From positions 297,491-361,490 of the IMG/VR virus record IMGVR_UViG_3300034073_005389: a stretch of 64,000 nt of DNA. One strand, 5' to 3'. Below, piece after piece: positions 28,632 through 64,000 of this stretch. A program made the translations under genes and the position numbers. Under the pieces are notes generated by a model. It made no database searches and was not told where the DNA came from. It saw only the letters and a program-made list of their open reading frames with translations. How positions within the stretch are numbered: the first letter of the stretch is position 1; each line of letters opens with the position of its first letter.

Positions 28632-28635
28632 ATAT

Positions 28636-28965: not shown

Positions 28966-28969
28966 ATAT

Positions 28970-29242: not shown

Positions 29243-29246
29243 ATGT

Positions 29247-29492: not shown

Positions 29493-29496
29493 ATGT

Positions 29497-49468: not shown

Positions 49469-49801
49469 CTACTTGCGCGAAATACCACCATTCTGCCCAC
49501 GACTCGCCACAAACTTATTGCTCCCAGCAAGATAATCAGCAATCCGCTTGCTCAATCGACCATAATCCTCATACCGATTGCTAATCTTAGCAAACACCTG
49601 CCCAATCAGCAATGGCTTCACCACCTTTGCGTTATTGTTCTCATCAAAAATACTATTCAAAGCATTCTCAATCAGAATATCCTCCGAAAGATTGACATTC
49701 TCCCATTCCACCAAATCCCCCATAAACTTATTCAGCGTAGCCTCATGATCAATCGCACCCGCGTCATTACGAATAACATAGGAAACAAAATCAATCTTCA
49801 T
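49469..49801 (-). CDS. Winged-helix-like protein (AT-rich copy)
   Basis: SYVIRNDAGAIDHEATL.KFM.DL...IADYL...RGQNGG. Confidence 0.65.
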   Translation of the reverse strand: MKIDFVSYVIRNDAGAIDHEATLNKFMGDLVEWENVNLSEDILIENALNSIFDENNNAKVVKPLLIGQVFAKISNRYEDYGRLSKRIADYLAGSNKFVASRGQNGGISRK

Positions 49802-49869
49802 AATCTTTTTTTCCTTTCAGCAACCAACCATTCCCCCCACCTCTAATCACTCAGGTTGACCGATGGGCT

Positions 49870-50300: not shown

Positions 50301-50451
50301 TTTTGGCTAGGGCAAAAACCATTGTGTGCAGTTGTTTGAATCTATGCCTAAATGTGTTTTGCGCCCTAGCCAAAAAGCATTTTTTTTAGGGCTAGGGCTT
50401 ATGCCACACCCAATTGCCAACCGAATGCATTTATCCAAAAACACAAACACA

Positions 50452-50557
50452 AAAAAAAAAGCCAATGGCGGGATTTCCGCCATTGGCTTTCACACACGCA
50501 AAAAAAGACAAAAAAAAAGACAAAAAAAAAGCCCCAGCGCATTGGCGCTGGGGCTTT
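50452..50557 (-). terminator. Two tandem intrinsic terminators closing the GC-rich cassette region
   Basis: GCCAATGGCGG..CCGCCATTGGC and GCCCCAGCGC..GCGCTGGGGC, each preceded on + by long A runs. Confidence 0.8.
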
Positions 50558-50577
50558 GGGAGACGGTCAGTCAGGTT

Positions 50578-50925
50578 TCACCGAGCGATGCGCTCGACTC
50601 CGCCATTCTGACCACGCTGGGCGTGGAATCGCGTCTTGTCTCCCAAGTAATCCGCGATCTTCTTAGAGAATTCCCCGAACTGAGTGAACGAAACACCCTT
50701 TCCGAGAAGGTACTGGAACGCTTCGCCCACCACCAGGGGCTTGGGCATGCGTTTGTTATCGTGACGGTCAAAGACCGAGTTGACGGCTTCGCGGATGAGT
50801 TCGAACTCATCCGCCGAAGCGGACTCGAAAGCGATGAGGTCTTGCATGAACTTGTGGAGCGTTTGCTCGTGATCGATGGAACCATCATCCGAGCGAACCA
50901 CGTAGCTAGCGAGATTGATCTCCAT
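50578..50925 (-). CDS. Winged-helix-like protein (GC-rich copy)
   Basis: SYVVRSDDGSIDHEQTL.KFM.DL...IADYL...RGQNGG; GGAGG RBS. Confidence 0.7.
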   Translation of the reverse strand: MEINLASYVVRSDDGSIDHEQTLHKFMQDLIAFESASADEFELIREAVNSVFDRHDNKRMPKPLVVGEAFQYLLGKGVSFTQFGEFSKKIADYLGDKTRFHAQRGQNGGVERIAR

Positions 50926-51222
50926 GACTGTATCCTCCGAAGGGCGTTGCGGCGTGATTGCCTGCCCTCAATATTGGTTCTGCAGGTTGACCGATGGGTG
51001 CAACCGGGACAAAAAAACCTTTACTCAGGGGCATGTTGACCGATGGGTACAATCCATCTAAAAAACCAAAACCCCCGTTGAATAGCAGAGGTTGACCGAT
51101 GGGCGCTTTGACGCGCAGGTACATTGTAGATTAGAGGTTGACCGATGGGAACCCGATTGCACTTGGCAAAAAAAAATCCCAGGTGCCTAAGCACCTGGGA
51201 TAAGATAAGACTCACTTTAGTA

Positions 51223-51396
51223 CTAGCTGGTTCGCACCTGGTAACCCACCGCCTTCTCCAGGCTCTTGTCGGTTTGGCTCAGGTTCAGCTTGAGCGCTTC
51301 CTTACGAGCCGTAAGCAAACACTCGTACACCTTCACCACCGACTCAGACAAGGAGTTGCTTTCCAGGTCCAGCTGCAGACGAACGATCTTGTACAT
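51223..51396 (-). CDS. Cassette hypothetical protein
   Basis: AGGAGG RBS, start MYKIV. Confidence 0.6.
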   Translation of the reverse strand: MYKIVRLQLDLESNSLSESVVKVYECLLTARKEALKLNLSQTDKSLEKAVGYQVRTS

Positions 51397-51518
51397 AGAG
51401 CCTCCTATCAGGAATGACCCTGACACAGTAGTATTGCCTGGTTGACCGATGGGTGCGATCCATTAAAACTTGCTCAGGTACAGATGTACCTGAGCAAGTT
51501 AGGCTAAGCTACTACCTG

Positions 51519-52079
51519 TCAGCCGTGAGAGAAGCTGACCTTGGTGGGTCGGGTTGCCATCAGCTTGAAGTCGCTGGTGAACGTACGCTCCTTCATCACA
51601 GGTCCAGAACGCTTACCCATCACCCTGGCGATTGCCTCGTCACGGTCCACTTCCATCGTGATGTGATTAGTGGAGCCGTCTTTGTTGGTGATCTTGGAGT
51701 CAATCACCCCTCGACAACCTGGCGGTCCAGCATCTAGCTTGCGATCCACCCACCTGGACGCTTCCCCACTCATGTAGAAACCCATCTCCTCCAACACTCC
51801 ACCCTTCGCATCGTAGATGCAGGCGTTGATGGGCTTCTGCACCTTCTCACGCTGGCGTGTAGCCTTGGCTTCCTGCTTCTTCTCAGGAACCCTGAGAAGG
51901 TCTTGCAAGACCGCCTCTTGCACCAGCTTGAGCGCTGGCGTCGGATACAGCTCTCCCTTCTCCAGGCGAGCCAGAATCGAGACAGCCTCGGGAATCCCCG
52001 AAAGGAACTCCCTTTGAGCCTGCAAGAAAGCGGCAGCGGAAACCTTACCAGCGGACTGACGCAGGAACTTCTTGTGCAT
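51519..52079 (-). CDS. Cassette hypothetical protein
   Basis: GGAGG RBS, start MHKKF. Confidence 0.7.
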   Translation of the reverse strand: MHKKFLRQSAGKVSAAAFLQAQREFLSGIPEAVSILARLEKGELYPTPALKLVQEAVLQDLLRVPEKKQEAKATRQREKVQKPINACIYDAKGGVLEEMGFYMSGEASRWVDRKLDAGPPGCRGVIDSKITNKDGSTNHITMEVDRDEAIARVMGKRSGPVMKERTFTSDFKLMATRPTKVSFSHG

Positions 52080-52189
52080 AGGAACCTCCAAACAAAGCCG
52101 TGATTGGCTCACCTATGTTTGTGCAAGTTGACCGATGGGTTCAAGCCACTGAAAACGCTCTTGAGACCATGTGGTCTCAAGAGCCTAGA

Positions 52190-52399
52190 CTAGAAGCTCA
52201 AAGGCGATCCATCCTCGTGTTCAGACTCCTCCGGCAACATGTCAATGAATGGGGCTGCCGTCTCCCAATCATCCTCACAGGCACCTCCCCTGAGGTTGAG
52301 CGTGTGAATACGCTCAAAATCAGGAATATAGCTGTCCATCTCATCTTCCAACATGGGGACGGATCGAGGAACGTATTGCTTTCCCATAACTACCTCCAT
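52190..52399 (-). CDS. Cassette acidic hypothetical protein
   Basis: Between motif 52432 and 3' hairpin. Confidence 0.55.
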   Translation of the reverse strand: MEVVMGKQYVPRSVPMLEDEMDSYIPDFERIHTLNLRGGACEDDWETAAPFIDMLPEESEHEDGSPLSF

Positions 52400-52528
52400 G
52401 AACCATGATTGGTTCACAATAGGTTTAGCAAGTTGACCGATGGGCTACCTGGATTGCACTCAACAAAAAAAAACGCCCTAGTACTCGTGTGTGAGTACTA
52501 GAGCGTTTAGGTGTGTGAGACTGTTTAG

Positions 52529-53110
52529 TTACACGCCGAGAGCAGCAAGCCGCTCATCGATGTTATTGATGCGTTCTTGTTCCCACGCTTCCGCACCAGG
52601 ATCATCTTGGTTGTGAGCGTGTAGCAGTGCTTCCACTGCCACTCGACGCTGAGCAATCAAGTTGTCAATCTCTCGCTGCCTGGGATTGGGCATACCTTTG
52701 ACGTAGCCCTGCAAGGTAGCTTGAGCGGTTGGTGCTGGAGACTTGCCGTATCGCTCTTGTTGGATCAAGTACCTGGCTCGTTGCCTGGCACGATCCAACT
52801 GCAAGCTGTACAGCTCACCAGTGTATGCGCCCGTGAACTTCTCAATGGCTCTGATGATTTCTTTCTTTGTCTCCGCTTCGGACTTTTCCTTGTTTGCCAG
52901 ATTGCACTCATGGATGAACGTTTTAGCGTCCTCCAAGGTTGCAACCTTGGTCGGCATGGGCGGAGGCGTTTGAGCAGGCTTGACAGGCTTGCTTACCACC
53001 TTTCGCTCCTCGGGAATGGTCCGGATTTGGATTGTCTGACGCTTCTCTTGCAACTTGGCAAGAGACGCAGCATACAACGCAATCATTTCGCGGAGATCGA
53101 CTTTGTTCAT
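52529..53110 (-). CDS. Cassette hypothetical protein
   Basis: GGAG RBS, start MNKVD. Confidence 0.7.
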   Translation of the reverse strand: MNKVDLREMIALYAASLAKLQEKRQTIQIRTIPEERKVVSKPVKPAQTPPPMPTKVATLEDAKTFIHECNLANKEKSEAETKKEIIRAIEKFTGAYTGELYSLQLDRARQRARYLIQQERYGKSPAPTAQATLQGYVKGMPNPRQREIDNLIAQRRVAVEALLHAHNQDDPGAEAWEQERINNIDERLAALGV

Positions 53111-53231
53111 GTTTACTCCAATCCACTGACAAGTGCCAGTAGACACCTATGGTTGTGCTGGTTGACCGATGGGTGTGAGCCGCTGAAACAAAATGCTCAG
53201 GTCTATATAGACCTGAGCACCTGTCAACTCG

Positions 53232-53480
53232 TCACCTCTCGTCAGTGAGAACCATCACGAACTCCTTGTCAAGCAAGATCTTGAGCGCATCATCCTGTTC
53301 GGATGGATGCAGCTGTACTTCCAAGGGGAAGAATCGGCTCCAATCATAGGCTCGAACCCGGTATTCTTCCGGCTCACCTGCACAGTCCCAAGTAGGACCT
53401 TTGGCTGGAACATAGTCCAGCTCCAGGTCTACGGTAATGGTTTTGTGGTTGCGTACGATCTGCATCTGAATGTCTTTCAT
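53232..53480 (-). CDS. Cassette hypothetical protein
   Basis: AGGAGG RBS. Confidence 0.65.
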   Translation of the reverse strand: MKDIQMQIVRNHKTITVDLELDYVPAKGPTWDCAGEPEEYRVRAYDWSRFFPLEVQLHPSEQDDALKILLDKEFVMVLTDER

Positions 53481-53574
53481 AAAACCTCCTGGGTCAATGG
53501 TGGTGTAGTAAGTTGACCGATGGGTGCATACAACTGAAAACGCTCATGGAACCATATGGATCCATGAGCATAAA

Positions 53575-53820
53575 CTAGATGATGTTGAGCCTGCTCCAAA
53601 ACCTTTGGCTTTCTTTCCCTACCTCACACAGAGGCAAAGGAGCGACTTCATTTTGAGCAAGCATGCGCCTGACTTTACGCCCTTCCTGGTCCTCCTTGAA
53701 ACCAGGAAGGCAAATAAAGTCTCTGGAAACGGCTTCAGAGAATGCGTCCTCCAACGCAATCTCGAACTGTTTCTCAGACTCGAACTTATAGCCACTGATA
53801 GTGTAAATGCACTGTGCCAT
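53575..53820 (-). CDS. Cassette hypothetical protein
   Basis: GGAGG RBS, start MAQCI. Confidence 0.6.
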   Translation of the reverse strand: MAQCIYTISGYKFESEKQFEIALEDAFSEAVSRDFICLPGFKEDQEGRKVRRMLAQNEVAPLPLCEVGKESQRFWSRLNII

Positions 53821-53939
53821 AAATAGCACCTCCGTAACCTACTTACTGCTTGTTGACCGATGGGTTACCTGGATTGAACTTAACAAAAAAACCCAGGCTT
53901 ACATGGACTCATTAGAATCCACATAAACCTGGGCTCTCA

Positions 53940-54167
53940 CTACCTCACCAACACGAAGGTGTTGGGTTGACCCAGCCAGCTGTTGAGCTGGGTCGCCATC
54001 TGCCTTGCATCTTGGTATGTGTACTCTTGTACACGAGTTATGCCGTTGCGAGTGTCTCGCAACTTCCAACCTTTCTCCTCGAACAATGCCAGGAAACAAT
54101 CCTGGCAAATCGGCTTGCAGTTGAACTTGCATGTGCTTGCGCTTTTATCACACATCTGGCAGTTCAT
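53940..54167 (-). CDS. Cassette Zn-finger-like protein
   Basis: CQMC...CQDC. Confidence 0.6.
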   Translation of the reverse strand: MNCQMCDKSASTCKFNCKPICQDCFLALFEEKGWKLRDTRNGITRVQEYTYQDARQMATQLNSWLGQPNTFVLVR

Positions 54168-54280
54168 AATGCCTTTCCATCTACTCTGTTTGGTGAGTAG
54201 ACACCTATACCTATCTATGTTGACCGATGGGTGCACACAACTGAAACGTTGTGCAGGAGTTGCCTCCTGCACAACCTTTC

Positions 54281-54739
54281 TCAGTAGTCGTCGCGACCCG
54301 ACCACCGATCCTGTTCCATGTACTGCATGTACCTCTCCTCCTCGTTCCAGTGCTCGTAGGGTCGCATCATACGAGCGTTGTAGTCTCTGAGTACCGACTC
54401 CAGCGCCTCCCGCTTGGCGTGGAGCCTGTTGATGTAGGCGTCTCGCTGCGCCTCCATCTCTTCGTTCACCTGCTCTCGTAGGTGATCGCGCTCCTCCTTG
54501 GTCAAGTCGCGACCAAGAGCAGACTCACGACTACAGAACTCCTCATACGCACGCTCTTGGAAGAGGTCATCCTCCATCTCACGTGCGTGGTCGTCCCAGT
54601 GGTAACGCTCGATCTGAGCATTGGTATCATTCCACTGAGAGGCGAGACCCTTGATGATCTCCTCCTTTGCCTGAGCGATCAGGCGCTCGTGGTCCGTAGC
54701 GTTTTCGGGGCACTCGATGTTGATCACGTATCCACGCAT
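54281..54739 (-). CDS. Cassette acidic protein, paralog of 45425-45865
   Basis: RPYEHWNEEERYMQYME. Confidence 0.7.
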   Translation of the reverse strand: MRGYVINIECPENATDHERLIAQAKEEIIKGLASQWNDTNAQIERYHWDDHAREMEDDLFQERAYEEFCSRESALGRDLTKEERDHLREQVNEEMEAQRDAYINRLHAKREALESVLRDYNARMMRPYEHWNEEERYMQYMEQDRWSGRDDY

Positions 54740-54867
54740 ATCAGCCTCCAGACAAGCCTTGATTGGCTCACTTATGTTTTTGCATGTTGACCGATGGGTA
54801 CAGCCCACTGAAAAAAAACCGTGTCAGGAAATTCCTGACACGGCTAGGTATGTACGCTAGTTGGCGA

Positions 54868-55074
54868 TCACTTGACCTTGATCACCAGACCGTTTTGCAC
54901 GGTCACCTCTGCGTACCAGGTATGGGGCTGCGGGTAGTGCGGTCCACCTACCGCAGTAGTCCCATTCTCTGGCGGGTTGCCGAGACCAGGTGCGTAAATA
55001 TGCACCGGTTTCCCGGCAGCCACATCATCCTTGAGTTGCTTCTTGGTCTTGTAGTTCTTGGTGGTGTAGAACAC
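54868..55074 (-). CDS. Cassette conserved small phage protein
   Basis: KTKKQLK...GPHYPQPHTWYA. Confidence 0.75.
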   Translation of the reverse strand: MFYTTKNYKTKKQLKDDVAAGKPVHIYAPGLGNPPENGTTAVGGPHYPQPHTWYAEVTVQNGLVIKVK

Positions 55075-55202
55075 TGAACCCTCCTAGACAAAGCCGTGAT
55101 TGGCTCAATGGTAGTTGTGCAGGTTGACCGATGGGTACGGACCACTGAAACATGCTTGGAAGCATTCGCTTCCAAGCACGTTTTGTTGAGAGTGTTGTTA
55201 GA

Positions 55203-56827
55203 TTACTTCTTGTTGCTCTCCTTGTAGAGTACGATCAGCTGTTCGTATACCTGGCTGTGATGGTACAATCCTTCCTGCCATTCCAGCAGGAGTTTTTTCA
55301 CCCTTTCCTGCTGAATCTCGTTGAGAGCGTTGTACAGGTACAGACCTGGCAGTTCCCCATCCCACAGCTGGGTGAGAAGCCTCTCCTCTTCCATGACCAG
55401 AGCCTTGATCTTCTGGTCGTACGCCAACTGCTTGCGCAGCTTGGCGATACGGTTTTTGATCTGGTGTACGGTGTTGCGGTTGCGGTTGCTCATGTGAGAC
55501 TCCGAGAAAGCCGTGTGTGGAGTTGTACGGCTCACATACAGTTATGCGGGTTGACCGATGGGTTAACTTGTTTGCATTTAACAAAAAAAACCCTTGGCTT
55601 GCTTGCGCAAACCAAGGGCTTTATCACTGCAACGAAAGCAAGAACATCTCTCCTTTCTGAGTGAAAGACTTGAGAATCATACCGCCAGCCATGGAGTAAA
55701 CTCCAAGGTCTGTGCCAGGATGAACTTTGCTGTTGAACTTTGCCACACGATCTCCATTGGGAGCCATGTAGGCAATGGTCAGCCCTTGCTCCAGGGCTTT
55801 CTCGAACTCAACGTGGCTAATCTGCATAGCTACCTCCTCGTATTGAAGTATGTATATTGACCGATGGGTGCAAACAACTAAAACTGCAAGCACCTGATTG
55901 CTCAGGTGCTTGCAAGAGTCAGTACATGCTGATGCTGTTCTCAATCTCTTGGTCTTGGCTCAACCGAGCCGCCTCCTTCCAGCGGCGCTGAACCATCCAA
56001 CGGGTGACCAGCCCGTTGTACTTGAATGCTTTTTCGCACGCTTCTACGGTTTTCCGCCATGCCTCTGCCGCCTTTTGGTTACCGGTGGCGGCAGCGAACT
56101 GCCCCTCCACCGAAGCCAGGATGGAGAGAGAGATGAAAGGCGTGCTGGATCGCATGATCTTCATGTTTATCTCCTAGAGCCATTGGTTGATTGGCTCACT
56201 TGTAGTTGTGCAGGTTGACCGATGGGTACATACCACTAAAACTGCAAGTACCTGATTGCTCAGGTACTTGCGTGTTTCATGAGTTCACGTATTCCTCCTC
56301 TGCCTTATTGATGATGCGGTGCGCCAAGTTGTCAATCTCATCCATCTCTGCCTCGGTGGCTTGGTCGAGCGCACCCGCAGACACAAGCTCCATCACCTTC
56401 AGATGAAGGTTGCCGATGTTATGGCAACCATTCACGTAGTTGTATTCTCCTCGGATCTTTCCGAAATGGTTCTTGTTACAAGCAAACCCGTTGTTACGGA
56501 GATGCTTGATGACCAGGGGGATCAGCCTACCCAGTTGCATAACTTGCCTTTCCGAGCCATAGTGGCTCACTTATGTTTTTGGAAGTTGACCGATGGGTAC
56601 AACCAACTGAAACATGCTCAGGATTGCTCCTAAGCATGCTTGTCTCAGAGAGATAGGCGAGATACCACCCTGCACCCCTGACGAACCAACGAGGCAAACA
56701 TGCGCTCCCAGTTGTCCTCAGAGACGAGCATGGTTGCCTCGTCTCCTTCTTTGGTAATGTACCACAGGCGTACATTACATTTTTCTTTGATCCCAGGGCT
56801 AACTGCCCTGGGTTTTAGCTTACTCAC
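55203..56827 (-). other. Five single-gene cassettes with small hypothetical proteins
   Basis: 55203-55493, 55624-55827, 55919-56164, 56277-56540, 56645-56827; each between a motif copy and a 3' hairpin. Confidence 0.6.
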
Positions 56828-57039
56828 GTCTACTTATCCTTTCTTGCGTGAACAATAGTCCAACGCAAAGAAAAAGAACCCCATAGAACATGAAGTCAAA
56901 TAACTCCATAACTATGTTTGTACATGTTGACCGATGGGTGCGAACCATTGAAACAAGAACCCAGGATTGCTGTTGCAATCCTGGGTTCTTATCTGCTCAC
57001 CCACCGGAATCCGTTAGGACTCAACAGTGGGTGAGTGTG

Positions 57040-57900
57040 TCAACCGAGCGCCAGCTTCGCCAGGGCGATTGCGCCCTCCCGACTGCGGGCGCCGCCGATG
57101 AACCGTGCGTTGTGGCAGAATACGGAATCATGAACTCCAGTCACTGCCGCCAGCTGTTCGTTTCGTAGCCCCGCCCATGCCTCGGGGAGCGGTCGGCGTT
57201 GCCCGAAGCTCCCCATGCTGGGCGGAACGCACTGGACCAGCCAGTCGTCCGCTTGGGGGAACACGAGGAAGAGCGCGTGGGTGCTCTCCTCCACCACCGT
57301 CTGCATGACCGGCATGAACCGGTCCAGAACGATGATCTTCCCCTCGATTGCGTTGGAGATGGCGTGGCGAGCGCCCTCCAACGCGAGCATCCGACCCTGC
57401 GCAGAGGCGATCACCCTGCGCAGGTGTGCCTCTGCAAACTCGACGGCGCGGGCGAATGCGTCGTCGAAGTTTTGCGCCTCGTGCCAGCAGGGGTTGAACC
57501 CGCTGACCACATCAGAGAAGGTGTGGTGATCCACACCTTCAGTAATGCTGCGGGTGCCGTACCCGCAGTCGAGGGCGTCAACCGCCCAGATGAGGTCGCT
57601 TTCGACCTCCCCCTCCACGCCGGGGGCGATGGAAGCACCAAAGTGCTTCCACACGAGACCGGCGCTGCTGTAGGGCACCCCATTGGGGCGCACGCCAGCG
57701 CCCCCCTTCTGGTGGTGGTCGAATCGTAGCGTGGTGGGGTCATAGACCCCTCCCACGTCCACAACAACCATCCCCATCTCGATCACCTTGGGATCGCGGG
57801 TCCGGATAACCGGACCCTCGAACCCCGCCATGCGCAAAATAGCGCAGGCGAGAACGTCGTCGGCGTGGAAGGGACCATTGTGAGTGACAATACTGCTCAT
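57040..57900 (-). CDS. MYG1/UPF0160-family DHH exonuclease
   Basis: THNGPFHADD, RTRD, DVGGVYD, FDHHQ, SSAGLVW, FCH. Confidence 0.9.
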   Translation of the reverse strand: MSSIVTHNGPFHADDVLACAILRMAGFEGPVIRTRDPKVIEMGMVVVDVGGVYDPTTLRFDHHQKGGAGVRPNGVPYSSAGLVWKHFGASIAPGVEGEVESDLIWAVDALDCGYGTRSITEGVDHHTFSDVVSGFNPCWHEAQNFDDAFARAVEFAEAHLRRVIASAQGRMLALEGARHAISNAIEGKIIVLDRFMPVMQTVVEESTHALFLVFPQADDWLVQCVPPSMGSFGQRRPLPEAWAGLRNEQLAAVTGVHDSVFCHNARFIGGARSREGAIALAKLALG

Positions 57901-58032
57901 GTGAGCCTCCTAGAAAGCCGTGTGTGAAGTTGTACGGCTCACATACAGTTGTGCAAGTTGACCGATGGGTACAAGCCATGTAGAAAATCGGTGAGTCAGA
58001 ATCTCGAAAGACTCAATGACTCACCGAGTGTG

Positions 58033-58506
58033 TCAACCGTAGAGCGTTCGGAGGGTCGCGCAAACGCGCGTCGCCTCCGATTGTTGGAACCGCTCCACTT
58101 TCTGGAGCAGTTCGATTGACTCTTCCCGGTCCATGCCGGGAAGCTGACGGAGTGCCAGCAACAGCAGTTTGCTGCTGGCGGTGGGTGCGCCGTCGAAGCG
58201 CACCACCTCACCGTTGAGGGTGAGGGAGAAGGGCTCATCGCCCTCCTCGCCCTCGCCCTCGCCCTCATTGCCGAGTGCCTCACCGAGTGACCATGCGGTC
58301 ACTCGGTGGGAGGAGGTGCCTGAGTGCCCGTCAAGGCGCACCGACACCCCCTCCTCGTGGGTGAGGGTAAGAACTGCGGGGAGGAGTAACGTACTCCTCC
58401 CGATGTGGTGCCTGAACGAGCCGAGGACAATCGCCCCCAGCTCGTTCAGCACCACCTGGCGGGGTTCAAACCCCGCCATGGCTGCGAAACCAGTTGCAAT
58501 AATCAT
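58033..58506 (-). CDS. Cassette hypothetical protein
   Basis: AGGAGG RBS, start MIIAT. Confidence 0.6.
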   Translation of the reverse strand: MIIATGFAAMAGFEPRQVVLNELGAIVLGSFRHHIGRSTLLLPAVLTLTHEEGVSVRLDGHSGTSSHRVTAWSLGEALGNEGEGEGEEGDEPFSLTLNGEVVRFDGAPTASSKLLLLALRQLPGMDREESIELLQKVERFQQSEATRVCATLRTLYG

Positions 58507-58680
58507 TGCAACCTCCTTGCAGAGTCTATCCACTACCCGTAATAGATCAGCATGACCTGTCATCAGGTAACAGCTTCGACTCTCACATACAGTTGTGCAA
58601 GTTGACCGATGGGTACAAGCCATGTAGAATCAGTGAGCCGGAATCCCGAAGGACTCAACAGCTCACTGATTCCGGGACAC

Positions 58681-58911
58681 CTACAGATCGTAGACGCCCC
58701 GTTGTCCCACGATTGACCAAGAGGAGTACTCCTCTTGGTCAATCATGGTTGTGTGTCCGACGATGAGGTTTTCAAACCTCTCGTCGGTCACCAGTTTGTA
58801 GGCGTCGCCACGTAGCAACGCCTTTGCCGCCCGCATGGCGAGCGGCAGAGGGAGACCCGTCTTTCGACGGATCTCCCTCCCCAAAACCACACGTCTTCGT
58901 TTCAGTGTCAT
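58681..58911 (-). CDS. Cassette basic hypothetical protein
   Basis: GGAGG RBS, start MTLKRRR. Confidence 0.6.
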   Translation of the reverse strand: MTLKRRRVVLGREIRRKTGLPLPLAMRAAKALLRGDAYKLVTDERFENLIVGHTTMIDQEEYSSWSIVGQRGVYDL

Positions 58912-59059
58912 TTGACACCTCCACTTACTTGTTTGCAAGTTGACCGATGGGTGCGTGCCAGTTAGATTGACCAGCCGGAATCCCGAAGGACTCAACAGCT
59001 GGTCAATACTACCCCCTCACTGAAGCTCAACCCTCTCAGGGAACTTCAGTGAGGGACCT

Positions 59060-59407
59060 TCACACCTCACACCAGGGAATAGTCTCCCTGGTGAAATCCT
59101 CCTCCACCTCATGCCAGCCGAACTGGTCGGCATGAGGTGAAACCCTCCCCACGTAGCGGACCAAACGAAATGGTCCGCTGTGGGGGTAGTCCGTATCGTA
59201 CGCGGCGGACTCTTCGTCCACCTCGTACGCCACCACCCACGCCATTCCGGCGTGGAAGCCACGCGCCCACGGGGGCGCGTCGTCGCCCCGAAGAGCCCAG
59301 AGCCCTTCGGGGTGGGTATAGAGGAGGTCACGGACCTCCTCCATGGTGGGGATGGGGAGGTCCGTCTCCGGAACCTCCCCATCCCAATCAGGAAACATCA
59401 CCCTCAT
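59060..59407 (-). CDS. Cassette acidic hypothetical protein
   Basis: AGGAGG RBS, start MRVMF. Confidence 0.65.
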   Translation of the reverse strand: MRVMFPDWDGEVPETDLPIPTMEEVRDLLYTHPEGLWALRGDDAPPWARGFHAGMAWVVAYEVDEESAAYDTDYPHSGPFRLVRYVGRVSPHADQFGWHEVEEDFTRETIPWCEV

Positions 59408-59575
59408 GGTGACCTCCTTGTAGAGTCTATCCACTACCCGCAACAGATCACCACGATCTATTATCAGGCAGTAGCTTCGACCCTCACATACAGTTATGCA
59501 AGTTGACCGATGGGTGCACGCCAGTTAGATTGACCAGCCGGAATCCCGAAGGACTCAACAGCTGGTCAATCTCAC

Positions 59576-59797
59576 TCACTGCGGGAGGAAGCTCCGAAGA
59601 GCCTCCATCGCCACAGCGAGGGTTGCGCCCCCGCCCGTGCGGTCCCACGCCCCTCGGGCGTGGTTCTCCGCTGCTGGCACGTAGGTGACGTGCCAGCAGC
59701 GCCCGCAGGCGCACCCATCCGGGGAAGGTGGCGTGATCTCCACCTTCCCCGGACCCCAGGCGGCACAAGCCGCCTGTACCAGAGATTCGAAGTCCAT
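59576..59797 (-). CDS. Cassette hypothetical protein
   Basis: AGGAGG RBS, start MDFES. Confidence 0.6.
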   Translation of the reverse strand: MDFESLVQAACAAWGPGKVEITPPSPDGCACGRCWHVTYVPAAENHARGAWDRTGGGATLAVAMEALRSFLPQ

Positions 59798-59972
59798 GTG
59801 GACCTCCTCAGAGAGCGTATCCACTACCCGCAATAGATCACCACGATCTATCATCAGATAGAGGTTTCCACCCTCACATGCAGTTATGCAGGTTGACCGA
59901 TGGGTGCGAGCAGTGTAGAAACTCGGCAAGCCGGAATCCCTTACGGGACTCAACAGCTTGCCGAGGGGGGAG

Positions 59973-60185
59973 TCAATGAAGCTTGAAAAGCTTCATTGCC
60001 TCCCCCGCTGTCATTTTTTGCGGGAAGTCGTATTCATATACGACCCCCGCTACGTCGTACGTGAGTCCGAGGTACACAAGTACCTCGGACTCTGGGGGGA
60101 GGACTGCCAGCCTCTGGCAGTCCTCCCCGTGCAAATATGGATAGCCCCATAAATCGGGGCTCATCCACTCGTAGAATTCCTCCAT
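59973..60185 (-). CDS. Cassette protein, paralog of 61286-61489
   Basis: M.EFYE...LP..SEV.VY.G..Y...G.VY....P..MTA.EA.K.F. Confidence 0.7.
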   Translation of the reverse strand: MEEFYEWMSPDLWGYPYLHGEDCQRLAVLPPESEVLVYLGLTYDVAGVVYEYDFPQKMTAGEAMKLFKLH

Positions 60186-60447
60186 GGAATTCTCCTTAGA
60201 GAGCGTATCCACTACCCGCAATAGATCACCATAATCCATTATCAGGTAACAGCTTCAACTCTCACATACAGTTACGCAGGTTGACCGATGGGTGCAAGCC
60301 ATGTATATTAACAAAAAAATTGAAATACTCATATACTCTTGTGTGAAAAGAAATAAGTAACTTATACAAGTTGACCGATGGGTGCAAGCCGTGTAGAGTA
60401 ACGAGCCGGAATCCTTTGCAGGACTCAACGACTCGTCACTCGCATTG

Positions 60448-61110
60448 TTACTTGCGATTTTTCTTGCCACCAAAGTGGCTCAGAAAACTCGCAATCGCAC
60501 CCGCCGATGCGGGCTCACCTCGCACCGGAGGCGGAGGGGGAGGAGGAGGGGGAGGAGGAGGAGGGGGAGGGTATTCTGAATAATACCTCTCCTTATAATA
60601 CTCCTCCTTCAATCCCCCTGCACTCATGACAAAGCGCGAATACGCGATTTTGTCATGAAAGTTCTCCCAAGAGACCGACCAATCAGCCTCAATTGGGAGA
60701 ACCAGCCACTCTTTGCTGCGGTTTCCATACCGGGACGTGCTCAAATCCCGGTGAAGTTTACACCCCCGGAACACCGGGTCCCCCAGGGTGTAGCGTTTCC
60801 CCCCTTGGGGGATTGCCCTGACCGTGACGCATTGCGCCACGATCAGATCGTCGGCAGCCTTTTCAGCTGCCTTGCGTGCGGCTTCTTCAGCCGCTTTGGC
60901 TGCTTGCGCAGCCTCCCGCGCAGCTGCCTGCGCCGCCCGCTCCGCCCGCTCCTCCGCCAGACGAGCCTCTACCTGGGCGGCAAATGCCGGGTCCAGGTAG
61001 CTCCTTCCCGCCGCCCCGATAGGCGGCGGAGCCGCTTGCCCCCACGGATCGTAGGAGCCGCGCTGCGTGCCGGGCTCCTCCCCGTTGAGATAACGGTTCC
61101 AGTCACCCAT
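60448..61110 (-). CDS. Cassette protein with Ala/Glu/Lys helix and poly-Pro tract
   Basis: GGAGG RBS; AAEEAARKAAEK; run of about 14 Pro. Confidence 0.7.
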   Translation of the reverse strand: MGDWNRYLNGEEPGTQRGSYDPWGQAAPPPIGAAGRSYLDPAFAAQVEARLAEERAERAAQAAAREAAQAAKAAEEAARKAAEKAADDLIVAQCVTVRAIPQGGKRYTLGDPVFRGCKLHRDLSTSRYGNRSKEWLVLPIEADWSVSWENFHDKIAYSRFVMSAGGLKEEYYKERYYSEYPPPPPPPPPPPPPPPVRGEPASAGAIASFLSHFGGKKNRK

Positions 61111-61285
61111 AGGTGACCTCCTTGTAGAGTCTATCCACTACCCGCAATAGATCACCATGATCTATTATCAGGTAGAGGCTTCCACTCTCACATGCAGTTA
61201 TGCAGGTTGACCGATGGGTGCGAGCAGTGTAGAAACTCGACAAGCCGGAATCCCTTGCGAGACTCAACGGCTTGCCGAGCGACGG

Positions 61286-61489
61286 TCAGAGGAAGGCTTT
61301 TTGAGCCTCCTCTGCCGTCATTACTTCCGGGGCGCCGTGTTGGTACACGTACCCCGACATTTCGTATTCAATTCCGAAGTACACGCGTACTTCGGAATCG
61401 ATCGGGAGGGCGCGGAGGCGGACTTTATCCGCCTCCGCGAGCCAGGCGCGACCTACGTCGCCCCCCCCGCACTCGTAGAATTCCTGCAT
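61286..61489 (-). CDS. Cassette protein, paralog of 59973-60185
   Basis: See paralog alignment; AAGGAG RBS. Confidence 0.7.
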   Translation of the reverse strand: MQEFYECGGGDVGRAWLAEADKVRLRALPIDSEVRVYFGIEYEMSGYVYQHGAPEVMTAEEAQKAFL

Positions 61490-61804
61490 GGAATTCTCCT
61501 TAGAGAGCGTATCCACTACCCGTAACAGATCACCACGATCTATTATCAGATAGGGGCTTCCACTCTCACATATAGTTGTGCAGGTTGACCGATGGGTGCA
61601 GACCATGTATATTAACAAAAAAATTGAAGCAATCAACCGCTACTCGGTATTACTTGCGTGCCTTGTCGAGAAAATAATAAGTAAATAAATAAATACAAAA
61701 CAATAACTTGAATAGCCATAGATTCAAATAAGTTGACCGATGGGTGCAAACCACCAAAACTTGAACCCCCGGACTCACCTATACAGATGAGCCGGGGGTC
61801 CATC

Positions 61805-62035
61805 TCAGTCGGCACCTCCTTTCTCGGTTGCGGTGGCGGCGGTGGCGTACCCGTGGAACCACGGGTCGCCACCACCGATGAGGTGGGCGTCGGAGGCTGC
61901 CCAGTCAGCCTCCGACATGTTGTTGAGGGCGCGGGGACCCCAGTAGGGTCCCGCCCCCGAACCAAAGGTAAAGGCGTCACCTGGGGACGCCTCTACCTCC
62001 CAGGTTTTACCCTGGAAAACAACGACGCACTTCAT
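61805..62035 (-). CDS. Cassette hypothetical protein
   Basis: Between motif 62096 and 3' hairpin. Confidence 0.55.
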   Translation of the reverse strand: MKCVVVFQGKTWEVEASPGDAFTFGSGAGPYWGPRALNNMSEADWAASDAHLIGGGDPWFHGYATAATATEKGGAD

Positions 62036-62259
62036 GTGCGCCCCTTTCTGAGAGCCTCGGCGGGATTGCCATAGCTCTCACATACAGTTACGCAGGTTGA
62101 CCGATGGGTGCGAACCATGCAAACAAAAAAGTGGATGGTCTTTCGACCATCCACTCATCTAGCTGCGGTCTCGCTCCAGATTGGTGGAGTCCCCGCTCAG
62201 GACTGCTAGAGTCCCCTCAGGTTACGCCTGAGGACGTTCCCTCGTCACCACCGAGAAGA

Positions 62260-62619
62260 TCAGACGATCTCTCGGAAAGCGACGAACCCGAATACGGCGG
62301 TCTTGGTGACCGAACCGTCAGGGTTCGTCACTTCGACGGAGCGTCGCTCCGTCGTGGTGACGACCACCCGTCGCCCCTTGGAGAGCAGGCTCCGGATGGT
62401 GGTGTAGACCAGGGAGGTTTCTCCCATGATCATCACCACGTCTCCGGGAGCGCATTGCTCCACCAAAGTGGCGGCGAGGGTGGCAACTTCCGCCATGGTG
62501 GCGGAAGCGGGGACGTTCGGGAACGCGATGTCCCTGATGTCCCCGCCGAGCGCCTTGGCGGCGCTCAGCTGGTCCTCGCCCCACTTCTGGGACGGGTGGT
62601 TAGAAATGTTCACAAACAT
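62260..62619 (-). CDS. csx20: Csx20-like CRISPR-associated (putative ring nuclease) protein
   Basis: FVNISNHPS.KW...Q..AA..G.I.D..FP.V, MGE, TTER, K...F.FV.FRE pattern recalled for Csx20-type proteins. Confidence 0.65.
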   Translation of the reverse strand: MFVNISNHPSQKWGEDQLSAAKALGGDIRDIAFPNVPASATMAEVATLAATLVEQCAPGDVVMIMGETSLVYTTIRSLLSKGRRVVVTTTERRSVEVTNPDGSVTKTAVFGFVAFREIV

Positions 62620-63149
62620 TTCCAACCTTCCTATCGGCTTGATCGGGCTCCTCTATCAAGCCCAGCCGATAACCCTACCACAAGCGATGAATCAACATGA
62701 CTCATCATCAAGCGGCAGGCTCACTTATAGTTGTGCAGGTTGACCGATGGGTGCAGACCCCTGAAATAAAAAACCCCCCGGTCACTCCTGCCCACTATCA
62801 CCCGGTGCCTTTCAGCGTTGGTGAAGTGTTTTTATGGCAATAATTGGAGGGACCGGGGGGGATGCTAGGTCATAACAGCATCCTCCTATAACTGTCACTT
62901 CACTTAGTAACAGTTACACTAATAGATAAGTATGTTGACCGATGGGTGCGGACCCCTGAAATAAAAAAACCCCGCCACGCTGCAAAGCGTGGCGGGGCAC
63001 AACAGGGCATAGAGATAACCCTTTCCGTAGCCTATAGTAGTAAGATAACTCCTTCCGGCAAAATGCTCCGAAGTTATCTTCGTACCTTAGCTACACTAAT
63101 AGATAAGTATGTTGACCGATGGGTTAACTTGTTTGCATTTAACAAATAA

Positions 63150-63468
63150 AAAAACCCTGACCAGCTTTCGCCAGTCAGGGTTTGTATGAACGGCGTAGGG
63201 ACTCTGCCTCCCTCTTTCACCCTCTAAGTCACGGGCTCCGTTCTACTTGGTCCTTTGAGCATCGCAATGGTGTGCGTGCTCGTTTTTCCTCCGCGCCGAC
63301 CCCAGGGTAGGACTCTTTGCCCCGTATCGGGTTTGCGTGTGCGCTTATCCCGCCCTGTCTATCCAGGTTTCAGGCGGTTCTTTCCCGGCGCGCACAATGG
63401 GTCCTATAAAGGACCGTCAGTAGGGGAACACATAAGTGTCCGAGATCCCCAGATGCAACTAGCATCCT
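63150..63468 (-). ncRNA. Candidate structured non-coding RNA (~320 nt)
   Basis: Between motif 63484 and a terminator; no RBS-led ORF; nested long-range stems. Confidence 0.5.
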
Positions 63469-63616
63469 ACTATAACTCAGTATGTTGACCGATGGGTACA
63501 AACCATGTAGAATCTCGACAAGCCAGAATCCCTTGCGGAACTCAACAGCTTGTCGAGTCTCTCTCCCCACCTCTACCAGAATCCGTTAGGACTCGATGAT
63601 AGAGGTGGGGAGGTGT

Positions 63617-63859
63617 TTACTTGCGGCGGCTAAGCTGGTGGGCTCGCGCCCAGCCAGCCGCCGACGCCGCCCATGCCGCCACCGCCGCCGTGAGGCAGGC
63701 GATGGCGAGCAGGGCGATTCTGGCGGGGGCGTTTTTCGCCCCCGCCGCCCTCGCCGCCCAGTGGGCGGCGAGGGCGCGCCAAAGCGCGCTCCTCTCCGCC
63801 GCCCAGGCGGCGCGCGCCGACCTGAGGTCGGCGCGGATTCGAAAGAGGGACTTTTCCAT
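63617..63859 (-). CDS. Cassette Ala/Arg/Trp-rich small protein
   Basis: Purine-rich RBS, followed by conserved 3' hairpin. Confidence 0.55.
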   Translation of the reverse strand: MEKSLFRIRADLRSARAAWAAERSALWRALAAHWAARAAGAKNAPARIALLAIACLTAAVAAWAASAAGWARAHQLSRRK

Positions 63860-64000
63860 GGTCCCTTCCCTTCAAGCCCCATTGACACCCATAGACAATC
63901 GTCTCTCACCATGAGAGATTGGACTTCTCTGGCATGCCATGCGGCTCATGTATGGTTTGCTAGGTTGACCGATGGGTACAAACCATGTAGAAATTCGACA

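Follow-up and report, generated by a model that had tools for sequence, protein, structure and literature searches.

What kind of locus places dozens of very short genes in a row, each behind an identical stretch of sequence, and does such an arrangement reflect a functional and evolutionary module or merely repetitive DNA? This question is raised by a 361-kb uncultivated phage genome, in which the last 13 kb of the stretch analyzed here (64,000 nucleotides, hereafter the window) were described in an earlier note as an array of about 30 self-contained expression cassettes, and interpreted as a modular, recombination-shuffled, immediate-early host-takeover or anti-defence island. The following analysis confirms the observation itself, and supports the interpretation only in part.

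Organization of the array

A search of the window with the 13-mer CCCATCGGTCAAC, allowing up to one mismatch, recovered 50 matches, all on the minus strand and none on the plus strand; 0.02 are expected by chance. Of these, 34 lie between 50986 and 63976: 33 exact, and one ...CAAT variant at 55868. The earlier note gave this count correctly but not the strand; both genes and motif are on the minus strand. Direct reading and parsing of the sequence confirm a repeating order of motif, conserved TAnnnGTG block, 5′ leader hairpin in fixed register, Shine–Dalgarno (SD) site, short ORF or no ORF, 3′ hairpin, and next motif. Twenty-six units carry an SD-preceded ORF of 57–286 aa, and eight carry none; the latter comprise three highly structured RNAs, two AT-rich units, and three mini units of 46–56 nt.

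Several details differ from the earlier description. There are at least four leader families (A–D) plus short leaders, rather than two leader types. Three types of 3′ junction can be distinguished: T1, a bulged hairpin without a U tract; T2, a hairpin followed by GTTTTCAGTGG; and T3, a hairpin with U7–9 followed by GTTAAATGCAA. The motif extends beyond 13 nt, as a TAnnnGTG(AG) block follows at fixed spacing, and 16 further copies are scattered through the AT-rich first 50 kb. The window ends at an assembly break, and the array continues two cassettes beyond it; the full array has 36 units (14.3 kb) and starts just after tandem repeats. The features are as follows, all on the minus strand, with units numbered C1 to C34 in the direction of transcription; L165 and L167 are relatives recovered from metagenomes, discussed below.

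50441–64000: part of the array inside the window, 34 units, transcribed from 64000 down to 50441; GC-rich (0.49–0.59) in a 32% GC genome
63497–63976: C1, promoter, a leader unique to this unit, ORF 63617–63859 (80 aa, Ala-rich, membrane-like), then a hairpin plus a T1 bulged hairpin
63124–63496: C2, no ORF; highly structured RNA of about 331 nt (z=-4.6) ending in an intrinsic terminator (T3 junction)
62947–63123: C3, no ORF; structured small RNA (z=-5.9) with terminator; 98.9% conserved in L165
62752–62946: C4, no ORF; structured small RNA (z=-6.8) with terminator; its first 20 nt match C3; 98.5% conserved in L165
62109–62751: C5, long structured leader, ORF 62260–62619 (119 aa, Csx20-like, candidate cA4 ring nuclease), terminator
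61745–62108: C6, ORF 61805–62035 (76 aa), 3′ hairpin
61597–61744: C7, AT-rich, unstructured 148-nt unit without ORF; 97% conserved in L165
61219–61596: C8, leader A, ORF 61286–61489 (67 aa, paralog of C11), T1
60383–61218: C9, leader A, ORF 60448–61110 (220 aa, with a proline run of about 16 residues), T1; at a different place in L165
60293–60382: C10, AT-rich 90-nt unit without ORF; replaced by a 26-nt mini unit in relatives
59905–60292: C11, leader A, ORF 59973–60185 (70 aa), T1
59515–59904: C12, leader A, ORF 59576–59797 (73 aa), T1
58952–59514: C13, leader A, ORF 59060–59407 (115 aa), hairpin plus T1
58614–58951: C14, short leader, ORF 58681–58911 (76 aa), T1
57970–58613: C15, leader A, ORF 58033–58506 (157 aa), T1
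56939–57969: C16, leader B, ORF 57040–57900 (286 aa, MYG1/UPF0160 DHH-type phosphoesterase), T1 plus a second hairpin
56598–56938: C17, ORF 56645–56827 (60 aa, GTG start), T2
56227–56597: C18, ORF 56277–56540 (87 aa), T2
55869–56226: C19, leader C, ORF 55919–56164 (81 aa), T2
55563–55868: C20, motif variant ...CAAT, short leader, ORF 55624–55827 (67 aa), T3 terminator
55136–55562: C21, leader B, ORF 55203–55493 (96 aa), T2
54799–55135: C22, leader C, ORF 54868–55074 (68 aa), terminator; cargo replaced behind the same leader in L167
54232–54798: C23, leader C, ORF 54281–54739 (152 aa), T2
53865–54231: C24, leader D, ORF 53940–54167 (75 aa, Cys-rich), T3
53525–53864: C25, short leader, ORF 53575–53820 (81 aa), T2; whole unit absent from L167
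53174–53524: C26, short leader, ORF 53232–53480 (82 aa), T2
52445–53173: C27, leader D, ORF 52529–53110 (193 aa), T3
52140–52444: C28, leader similar to type C, ORF 52190–52387 (65 aa), T2
51454–52139: C29, leader C, ORF 51519–52079 (186 aa), T2
51150–51453: C30, ORF 51223–51396 (57 aa), T3
50999–51149: C31–C33, three mini units of 46, 56 and 49 nt, each a motif plus remnants of a terminator junction and no cargo, probably scars left by cassette loss; conserved in L167
50441–50998: C34, ORF 50578–50925 (115 aa; paralogs at 49469–49801 and 3901–4239), followed by two strong intrinsic terminators (50528–50557 and 50457–50491) that close the array
947–49867: 16 further copies of the same promoter type in the AT-rich region, with motif starts at 49867, 49018, 48593, 46044, 43780, 42313, 39062, 36868, 33240, 27193, 23180, 20083, 16528, 5915, 4720 and 959; consensus gggtT-CCCATCGGTcAAC-N9-TAtAaGTgaGGGg
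3327–45985: 11 tRNA genes downstream of those promoters (Leu-UAA x4, Arg-UCU x2, Ile-UAU, Gln-UUG, Gly-UCC, Tyr-GUA, Leu-CAA), reading codons common in the AT-rich genes

The abrupt rise in GC, from 0.32–0.40 to 0.49–0.59, could suggest an assembly chimera or a recent foreign insertion unrelated to the AT-rich phage. However, the same motif occurs in both compartments, and the same sequence, with identical junctions, is present in three independent sample assemblies, in one of them internal to the contig and AT-rich on both sides; as far as sequence data can go, this reading is refuted.

Evidence for a probable phage-specific promoter

The 13-mer is best explained as the upstream half of a promoter of roughly 34 nt, although this is inferred from sequence alone. 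The downstream TAnnnGTG block is conserved at fixed distance in both array and non-array copies. All 16 non-array copies lie outside same-strand genes, most of them 40–180 nt before the next same-strand gene or tRNA. The first leader helix begins 28–30 nt after the motif start in 49 of 79 distinct cassettes, across unrelated leader families. No sigma-70 match was found on the gene strand, in agreement with the earlier note's statement that the motif is not a sigma-70 consensus. A close relative, contig L123 (helicase 89% identical), instead has CCTCCCATCTGCTGGTAGG at four intergenic sites, one of them about 450 nt before the same helicase gene as a window copy, and keeps a looser TAnnGTG-like downstream block. 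The motif is confined to the stretch of about 65 kb inspected and is absent from the flanks. No RNA polymerase, sigma factor or activator gene was found in the roughly 100 kb inspected, so the component that reads the motif is only inferred.

It is also possible, though unlikely, that the 13-mer is mainly the binding site of a phage regulator: a repressor site, like the one-directional 13–14-bp stoperators of cluster A mycobacteriophages, or an activator box, like the MotA box of T4 middle promoters, with host RNA polymerase using only the downstream TAnnnG block. The site is asymmetric, 13 nt long, intergenic, present in many copies, and in one orientation relative to transcription; if TAnnnG is taken as -12 to -7, the box sits at about -34 to -22, where a MotA box sits. 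The box also differs in the close relative while the downstream block is broadly kept. However, the downstream block has a conserved G where sigma-70 needs T at -7, and runs straight into the leader hairpin, which places the likely start too close for a -10 hexamer. Stoperators have no partner element at a fixed distance, and no regulator gene was identified.

An antisense role is a more remote possibility, in which the reverse complement of the motif would act as the -35 element (TTGACC) of host sigma-70 promoters, using TAGAAT or TATATT 17 nt away. Nine of 34 copies give TTGACC-N17-TAGAAT/TATATT/TAGATT with 9–10 of 12 matches on the plus strand, all nine at T1-type or AT-rich junctions. The remaining 25 have no usable -10 on that strand, and the overall excess of promoter-like sites is modest (15 found, 7.5 +/- 2.9 expected). 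This reading explains only 6 of the 13 invariant bases and none of the downstream block, and there are no plus-strand genes; at most, it would be an added antisense function in one half of the array.

RNA structures and inferred transcript boundaries

The bulged 3′ hairpin and the 94-nt leader behave as RNA structures on the gene strand. For the T1 hairpin, 91.6% of cells are paired against 71.7% when shuffled (0/500 shuffles as high), 90 cells show changes on both sides against 34.5 (0/500), and an invariant apical stem contains a conserved G.U pair. Leader A is 98% paired, and 12 of its 24 pairs vary only through wobble-compatible changes on one side.

These structures raise the possibility that the array is transcribed as a few long RNAs, cut into single-gene mRNAs at the motif and/or the T1 hairpin, as RNase III sites do in the T7 early region. 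T1 is a structure of about 18–20 bp with a conserved UU bulge and no U tract, and units C8–C16, which have no canonical terminator between them, may be read through as longer transcripts. However, strong U7–9 terminators lie directly upstream of several motif copies (C2–C5, C20, C24, C27, C30), so downstream genes need their own promoter; the motif shows no consistent flanking stem in the array; and motif copies also precede isolated genes and a tRNA in the AT-rich region. Processing as a full alternative is improbable, but processing at T1 can coexist with the promoter model and is in fact part of it.

Variation among related phages

The earlier note proposed comparing related phages for cassette gain, loss or reordering with breakpoints inside the repeats, and this comparison came out in favor of shuffling. 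Four metagenome contigs, representing two or three relatives, share the exact motif. Unit C25 is missing from L167, with the crossover inside ACCCATCGGTCAAC. The C22 cargo is replaced between the SD site and the last 16 nt before the next motif, and C16 is replaced by a 196-aa cargo; C9 is relocated, and C10 is replaced by a 26-nt unit. Cargo turnover is near-complete in a further variant (contigs L168/L170), which shares about 5 of 26 cargos with the window. Within the array, promoter plus leader A copies are 84% identical on average, against 43% for their cargos, which are unrelated apart from C8 and C11.

Site-specific recombination at the 13-mer or the T1 hairpin by a dedicated recombinase, as in an integron, could also move cassettes. 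The C25 crossover lies inside the 14-nt motif with unrelated sequence on both sides; T1 resembles an attC site in being a 3′ hairpin with conserved bulged bases and a covarying stem; and the reverse complement of the motif, GTTGACC, matches 6 of 7 positions of the integron core site GTTRRRY. However, other breakpoints lie elsewhere in the shared parts (inside leader A, at the SD site, and 16 nt before the motif), which fits homology-driven exchange. No integrase or recombinase family appears in the gene tables of about 100 kb, and every cassette has its own promoter, unlike integron cassettes. This alternative is considered very doubtful.

Cargo and codon usage

Two of the 26 cargos have recognizable families. 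C16 is MYG1 (Pfam E=6e-76), as the earlier note had proposed. The Csx20-like assignment of C5, also proposed there, is confirmed as a homology, but the match falls below the family's trusted cut-off (NCBIfam E=3.7e-13, 49.9 bits against a cut-off of 70); Csx20 is a proven cA4 ring nuclease (bioRxiv 10.1101/2024.09.24.614671). The other 24 cargos are ORFans, with no detectable family or function. Of the duplicated genes mentioned in the note, one pair is confirmed (C8/C11, 46% aa identity). Substitutions by codon position are 150/104/301, which supports coding; however, the nonsynonymous to synonymous codon count is high (207:233), and a few ORFs (C1, C6, C12, C18) show no excess of third-position changes, so some may not be real genes.

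Codon usage separates the array from the rest of the phage. GC3 is 0.75 and 0.67 in the two halves of the array, against 0.25 elsewhere, and TTA, AGA and ATA make up 0–3% of their codon families in the array, against 32%, 38% and 17% elsewhere; these are codons decoded by the phage's own tRNA-Leu(UAA), Arg(UCU) and Ile(UAU). The array starts directly after a tandem-repeat region, which follows an operon with a weak endolysin-like gene, and it heads a one-directional gene block of about 75 kb. Early expression is inferred from this position, the host-like GC-rich codon usage, and the avoidance of codons read by phage tRNAs. It is also possible that the GC-rich composition has other causes, such as recent acquisition from GC-rich donors or escape from silencing of AT-rich DNA; and if the component reading the motif must first be made, the array would be middle rather than immediate-early.

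Proposed model and comparison with known systems

The explanation we favor, with reasonable though not high confidence, is that the region is a tandem array of 36 autonomous expression cassettes. In this view, each unit starts with a promoter consisting of the invariant 13-mer, a 9-nt spacer and a TAnnnGTG(AG) block, read by a phage-encoded or virion-delivered RNA polymerase, sigma factor or activator. Transcription would probably start about 26–28 nt after the motif start, so that the mRNA begins with a protective 5′ stem-loop, followed by a strong SD site and one small gene, or, in three units, by a structured small RNA in place of the gene. The unit would end in a 3′ hairpin about 17–19 nt before the next promoter (T1 and T2 junctions), either an intrinsic terminator or the conserved bulged hairpin without a U tract, the latter most likely acting as a protein-recognised RNA processing or stabilising element. 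Because the same promoters, leaders and 3′ junctions flank otherwise unrelated cargo, general homologous or short-homology recombination between these parts, within a genome or between co-infecting relatives, would delete, insert, replace and move whole cassettes without breaking expression, making the array a hypervariable accessory-gene store.

The modular construction from reusable parts, the lack of a sigma-70 consensus, and the exchange of cassettes among relatives are supported by the sequence comparisons, whereas transcription start, termination, early timing, the polymerase, and a host-takeover or anti-defence role remain inferences. Less certainly, the array may be the first-expressed gene set, with host-like codon usage that would make it independent of the phage tRNAs serving the AT-rich remainder of the genome. 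Part of its cargo would counter host defence, for example the Csx20-like candidate ring nuclease and the MYG1 phosphoesterase, but this suggestion rests on those two proteins alone.

The earlier note compared the array with the PeSL promoter/stem-loop cassettes that shuffle early genes in T4-type phages, and this analogy is apt as a description of how the array works. The array is nevertheless not a member of the PeSL family proper: its promoter is not of the sigma-70 type, and no close T4-type relative was found. What is new here is thus a PeSL-like arrangement built on a different, apparently phage-specific promoter.

Organization of the cassette array

A search for CCCATCGGTCAAC with up to one mismatch recovered 50 matches in the window, all of them on the minus strand, against 0.02 expected from shuffled sequence. 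Thirty-four lie between 50986 and 63976 (33 exact and one ...CAAT variant), and the rest are spread every 1-10 kb through the first 50 kb. The window, from IMG/VR contig UViG_3300034073_005389 (JGI Ga0310130_0000007), has two compositions: GC is 0.30-0.40 up to about 48 kb, and then rises to 0.49-0.59 in the array. A local peak of 0.43 near 28-30 kb coincides, at 28416-29654, with internal DNA repeats of 75-82% identity and three overlapping paralogous ORFs, which look like a repeat-containing protein gene or tandem duplications. The observation made in the earlier note holds: reading and parsing the minus strand recovers the repeating order described there, namely motif, leader with stem-loop, Shine-Dalgarno (SD) site, short ORF, 3' hairpin, and next motif. 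Of the 34 units, numbered C1 to C34 in the direction of transcription, 26 carry an ORF of 57-286 aa and eight carry none.

The motif as half of a longer promoter-like element

Alignment of all copies shows a second conserved block at fixed spacing from the motif:
Array copies: TtT.a.tgG..tGcA-CCCATCGGTCAAC-cTGCAcAAc-TaTAaGTGAG
Scattered copies: gggtT-CCCATCGGTcAAC-N9-TAtAaGTgaGGGg

In 49 of 79 distinct cassettes from this phage and its relatives, the first helix of the leader begins 28-30 nt after the motif start, with the mode at 29, and this holds across leader families of unrelated sequence. It argues that transcripts start just upstream of that point and carry a 5'-terminal stem-loop. No sigma-70-type hexamer pair accompanies the motif on the gene strand. 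All 16 scattered copies lie outside same-strand genes, and most sit 40-180 nt before the next same-strand gene; one (46044) is about 60 nt before tRNA-Leu(CAA). Several array copies directly follow canonical hairpin-plus-U7-9 terminators, and the genes behind them therefore need their own start. A promoter is by far the simplest reading, although it is inferred from sequence alone.

On the plus strand, between 58602 and 63513, the reverse complement of nine motif copies reads TTGACC-N17-TAGAAT/TATATT, a good sigma-70-like promoter pointing antisense. The best two lie at the AT-rich, ORF-less units C7 and C10, and C10 carries a second one (TTAACA-N18-TATACT at 60308-60337). We also considered whether the 13-mer sits in the loop of a DNA or RNA hairpin. 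In AT-rich-region copies (959, 4720, 23180, 39062), the bases just upstream are complementary to the 3' end of the motif or its flank (GGTTG...CAACC, GTTA...TAAC, GGCT...AGCC), and in the related contig L123 (positions 2553 and 5062) long inverted repeats form stems of 8-11 bp that enclose the motif. In the array, however, the flanks do not covary consistently, and this reading was not adopted. About 135 nt downstream of the copy at 959, a group I intron lies at 630-824 on the minus strand (Rfam RF00028, 52.1 bits, just above the gathering score of 50).

Recognition appears to be phage-specific. L123, a relative whose helicase is 89% identical, carries CCTCCCATCTGCTGGTAGG instead at four intergenic sites, one of them about 450 nt upstream of the helicase gene, as a motif copy does in the window; a looser TAnnGTG-like block follows downstream. 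The upstream block has thus changed together with something in the phage, while the start region stayed broadly similar, which is the behavior expected of a private polymerase, sigma factor, or activator. The motif is limited to the array plus the following 50 kb or so: there is none in the 7.4 kb upstream of the array and none in the 10 kb beyond the last copy at 959, and a composite pattern finds nothing elsewhere in the 361-kb contig. In an IMG/VR scan for the 14-mer ACCCATCGGTCAAC, only the source contig has many copies and the rest are single chance hits; a scan for the L123-type motif found several copies only on its own 36-kb contig, with no array present. Gene tables covering about 100 kb around the array show no polymerase, sigma factor, or recombinase.

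Extent and surroundings of the array

The window end coincides with the contig end, but the possibility that the array lies at a physical genome end was rejected. The same genome, 100% identical over 11.7 kb, was assembled from two other samples, these assemblies break elsewhere, and in one of them the array is internal; the window end is therefore an assembly break. Two more cassettes precede C1, and the first promoter (variant ...GGTCAGC) follows directly on about 1 kb of non-coding AT-rich DNA. That DNA contains two blocks of degenerate tandem repeats (6824-7355 of L292, a contig of the same genome), with an 11-nt unit TAGATAGTAAA and a 22-nt unit ATCATTTTGTGGATAGTAGCGG of about 14 copies, which could be a replication origin or a packaging site; the related contig L170 has a (TAGA)n-like low-complexity stretch at the equivalent place. 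The non-coding DNA in turn follows a terminator and a same-strand operon that includes a weak endolysin-like gene. The array therefore has 36 motif copies in about 14.3 kb, is sharply bounded in GC on both sides, and heads a one-directional block of about 75 kb of small genes and tRNAs.

Other features were noted in this genome and its relatives:
L291, 11634-15359 (3-6 kb beyond the window start): adjacent genes for a class II aminoacyl-tRNA synthetase (PF00152), a TilS-like ATP_bind_3 protein, and a SpoU methylase, a translation-related cluster that fits the large tRNA set
L127, 7690-8740 (IMGVR_UViG_3300035180_003361, a relative with 50% helicase identity): a CRISPR-like array with 15 copies of the 36-nt repeat GTATCAGAGGCAGCTCATAGCCTTACAATATGAGAC and spacers of about 36 nt
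L129 and L131 (relatives with 43-48% helicase identity): genes made of many MORN-like 23-aa repeats, which account for the most frequent 11-mers in those loci

Reusable leaders and 3' junctions

The reusable leaders and 3' junctions are:
Leader A: 94 nt, in C8, C9, C11, C12, C13, C15, and the cassette before C1
Leader B: C16, C21
Leader C: GAGCCAATCAcGGCT, in C19, C22, C23, C29 and, more loosely, C18 and C28
Leader D: C24, C27
Short leaders: C14, C20, C25, C26
T1 junction: a bulged hairpin with a variable basal stem, a UU bulge, and a conserved apical stem GAGUCC/GGAUUC, without a U tract and followed by TCTACAtGG
T2 junction: a hairpin followed by GTTTTCAGTGG
T3 junction: a hairpin, U7-9, then GTTAAATGCAAACAAGTTAA

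Promoter plus leader A copies are 84% identical on average, while their cargos align at 43%, which is noise, apart from the C8/C11 paralog pair. T1 behaves as an RNA structure on the gene strand. In 30 copies, 91.6% of cells are paired against 71.7% after shuffling (0 of 500 shuffles as high), and 90 cells have changes on both sides against 34.5 (0 of 500). All eight basal pairs covary, and the apical stem keeps a G.U pair, which is G-C in the two exceptions. Leader A is 98% paired, and 12 of its 24 pairs vary on one side only, through wobble-compatible changes; because the shuffle control is weak for this case, we regard it as supportive rather than decisive. None of these parts matches an Rfam family: searches at the gathering threshold and at E<=1 returned no family for the leaders, T1, or the C2-C4 RNAs, but only terminator-like sub-threshold hits. 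An IMG/VR scan for the T1 core recovered only single chance matches without basal stems. By inference, the 5' hairpins would stabilize the mRNAs and T2 and T3 would terminate transcription, while T1, which has about 18-20 bp and a conserved sequence but no U tract, would be a protein-recognized processing or 3'-stabilizing element, comparable to the RNase III sites between T7 early genes.

Units without an ORF

C2 (331 nt, z=-4.6), C3 (z=-5.9), and C4 (z=-6.8) fold far better than shuffles and end in terminators. C3 and C4 are 98.5-98.9% conserved in a relative (L165) in which coding cassettes are 79-96% identical; they are likely small RNAs. C7 and C10 are AT-rich and unstructured, and C7 is also well conserved in that relative (97.3%). 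C31-C33 are units of 46-56 nt made of a motif plus remnants of terminator junctions, and probably mark places where cargo was lost.

Rearrangement among relatives

The earlier note had proposed comparing related contigs for cassette gain, loss, or reordering with breakpoints inside the repeats, and this comparison came out in favor of shuffling. A metagenome scan for two motif copies 324-354 nt apart returned six contigs, of which two were set aside: L169 is a WD40-repeat gene that encodes the peptide PIGQ, and L166 is an AT-rich contig with two copies that lack the downstream block. The comparisons rest on the remaining four contigs, representing two or three relatives. L165 and L167 come from one assembly and are probably adjacent pieces of one genome; they share 79-99% nucleotide identity with the matching window cassettes but differ by whole units:
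C25: absent, with the crossover inside ACCCATCGGTCAAC and unrelated sequence on both sides
C22: cargo and terminator replaced, with breakpoints between the SD site and the last 16 nt before the next motif
C9: behind C15 instead of behind C8, with the crossover within the 106 nt of promoter plus leader A
C10: replaced by a 26-nt mini unit
C16 (MYG1): replaced by an unrelated 196-aa cargo behind leader A

L168 and L170 are one phage found in two samples. They keep the motif, T1-type hairpins, and the block C16-C17-C18, but share only about five of 26 cargos with the window. Breakpoints are spread over the shared parts, which fits general homologous or short-homology recombination, as in the PeSL cassettes of T4-type phages, better than a site-specific mechanism.

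Coding potential and cargo

Differences between orthologous ORFs fall 150/104/301 on codon positions 1/2/3; as a set, the ORFs are therefore coding. There are 233 synonymous and 207 nonsynonymous codon changes, which is fast protein evolution, and a few ORFs (C1, C6, C12, C18) show no third-position excess and may not be genes. The C9 protein has a run of about 16 prolines (window 60520-60580), which appears longer in the relative (L167, 10400-10523).

Only two cargos have a family. C16 is MYG1/UPF0160, with a full-length match to PF03690 above the gathering score (E=6e-76, 256.5 bits, residues 4-285). C5 is Csx20-like: it matches NCBIfam NF040559 at E=3.7e-13 and 49.9 bits, below the trusted cut-off of 70, over profile positions 36-123 of 124; the JGI record lists PF27247 MJ1673, and there is no PDB sequence match. 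Cellular Csx20 degrades the type III CRISPR messenger cA4 (bioRxiv 10.1101/2024.09.24.614671), and a phage copy could act as an anti-CRISPR in the way viral ring nucleases do, though for C5 this remains a hypothesis. All other cargos are ORFans in Pfam, as are ten cargos from relatives searched against Pfam; those window cargos also checked against PHROGs, NCBIfam, or PDB sequences gave nothing. A near-identity search of the array against 50,697 cultivated phage records found no match. MYG1 homologs in 185,579 genomes reach at most 47% identity and fall in scattered phyla, and are therefore uninformative about the host.

Codon usage and phage tRNAs

Array ORFs have GC3 of 0.75 (C1-C16) and 0.67 (C17-C34), against 0.25 for 35 ORFs in the rest of the window. 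TTA, AGA, and ATA make up 0-3% of their codon families in the array, against 32%, 38%, and 17% elsewhere. The 11 phage tRNAs include Leu(UAA) four times and Arg(UCU) twice, spread among small ORFan genes at 23786-45337 on the minus strand, as well as Ile(UAU). The array would therefore need little from the phage tRNAs, while the AT-rich genes lean on them. Together with the position of the array at the head of the one-directional block, this is the main, indirect, argument that the array is expressed first, in a host with a much higher GC content than the phage. It is also possible that the GC island reflects recent acquisition from GC-rich donors, or avoidance of silencing of AT-rich DNA.

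Interpretation and significance

The interpretation offered in the earlier note, a recombination-shuffled immediate-early island for host takeover and anti-defense, is partly supported. The modular architecture, the conserved promoter-like element, the T1 structure, the codon split, and the exchange of whole units between relatives rest on direct sequence comparison, whereas promoter activity, start sites, termination, and processing, early timing, the activity of C5 on cA4, and any anti-defense role are inferences.

This finding extends promoter/terminator-mediated gene shuffling, so far described for sigma-70 PeSLs in T4-type phages, to an apparently unrelated huge phage, with an inferred private promoter and a far denser, cleaner architecture. 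It also supplies a catalogue for screening, with about 60 distinct small proteins and several structured RNAs from one fast-turning-over locus across the relatives seen here; these are the kind of genes that have yielded anti-defense factors, and they include a phage-borne Csx20-like candidate ring nuclease. The sharp codon split, together with the matching phage tRNA set, makes the idea of early genes in host codons and late genes in phage-tRNA codons directly testable within one genome. The invariant promoter, the leader families, and the T1 hairpin are compact, orthogonal-looking regulatory parts.

A more far-reaching possibility, which we consider unlikely on present evidence but of great interest if true, is that the array is a dedicated cassette platform of a huge-phage lineage, the functional counterpart of an integron. 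In this view, one invariant 13-mer would serve both as the address of a private transcription apparatus and as a portable recombination site, letting co-infecting relatives trade ready-to-express anti-defense genes and small RNAs. The conserved bulged hairpin would be the handle of a phage RNA-binding or RNA-cutting protein, and the whole island would be written in host-like GC-rich codons so that it works before the phage's own tRNAs exist, giving a physically separated two-codon-regime genome.

Comparison with known systems

The array shares an array-of-cassettes logic with integrons: a one-directional run of small single-gene cassettes, with highly variable cargo mostly of unknown function. 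However, no integrase or recombinase Pfam family appears in the gene tables on either side of the array, and every unit begins with the promoter motif, whereas integron cassettes are promoterless and expressed from one common promoter. Integron cassettes each end in an attC-type imperfect hairpin with bulged bases and recombine at a fixed point; T1 is a 3' hairpin with a conserved UU bulge and a covarying stem, but only about a third of the units have it, and breakpoints do not fall at one point.

Stoperators of cluster A mycobacteriophages resemble the motif in being asymmetric, 13 nt long, intergenic, present in tens of copies, and in one orientation relative to transcription. Here, however, the motif is coupled at fixed distance to a second conserved block and to the 5' hairpin of the mRNA, and it follows terminators, which fits initiation rather than blockage. 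Promoters of phage-encoded single-subunit (T7-type) RNA polymerases are long and nearly invariant, with a TATA-like block just before a G-rich start and one orientation along the genome. The architecture here is similar (TAtAaGTGAGGG), but the invariant block lies at about -27 to -15, further upstream than the T7 footprint, and no T7-type RNA polymerase gene was seen in the roughly 100 kb inspected.

Early regions of phages with their own transcription signals, such as the T7 class I region with its RNase III sites and the SPO1 host-takeover module, likewise present a dense run of small genes at the head of a one-directional block, bulged hairpins between genes that could serve as processing or 3'-stabilizing sites, and many strong promoters and terminators. 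In those phages, however, the early promoters are of the host sigma-70 type and gene content is fairly stable, whereas here the promoter appears phage-specific and the content turns over between close relatives. Codon-usage differences between early and late phage genes, and phage tRNAs that serve late genes, are also documented (e.g., PMC5683454). As in those cases, the presumed early genes look host-like and the rest of the genome matches the phage tRNA set, but the split in this genome is extreme and physically sharp.

The array works like the PeSL (promoter-early stem-loop) cassettes in the hyperplastic regions of T4-type phages (Arbiol et al., 2010, PMC2839356; Comeau et al., 2014, PMC4122927), the analogy drawn in the earlier note. 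Both have a composite stem-loop/terminator plus strong promoter plus SD between small ORFan genes; here the 3' hairpin ends about 17-19 nt before the motif at T1/T2 junctions, and SD and ATG follow the leader. Both have many similar copies concentrated in a variable region, and in both, indels and replacements between close relatives have crossovers inside the elements (here the C25 indel, the C22 replacement, and the C9 relocation), so that genes can be shuffled without losing expression. The array nevertheless fails the defining feature of a sigma-70 promoter, its roughly 34-nt element having the consensus CCCATCGGTCAAC-N9-TAnnnGTG, and no close T4-type relative was found; it is therefore not a member of that family. 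No listed top hit of the helicase in cultivated phages is a T4-type phage, with identity of at most 39%, and no T4 core gene appears in the roughly 100 kb inspected of the 361-kb genome. The principle of cassettes and shuffling is thus already known, but the private promoter, the uninterrupted 36-unit array, the several families of long structured 5' leaders and the sequence-conserved T1 hairpin without a U tract, the cassettes that apparently encode only small RNAs, and the sharply separated codon regime of a GC-rich island in an AT-rich genome appear to be new.
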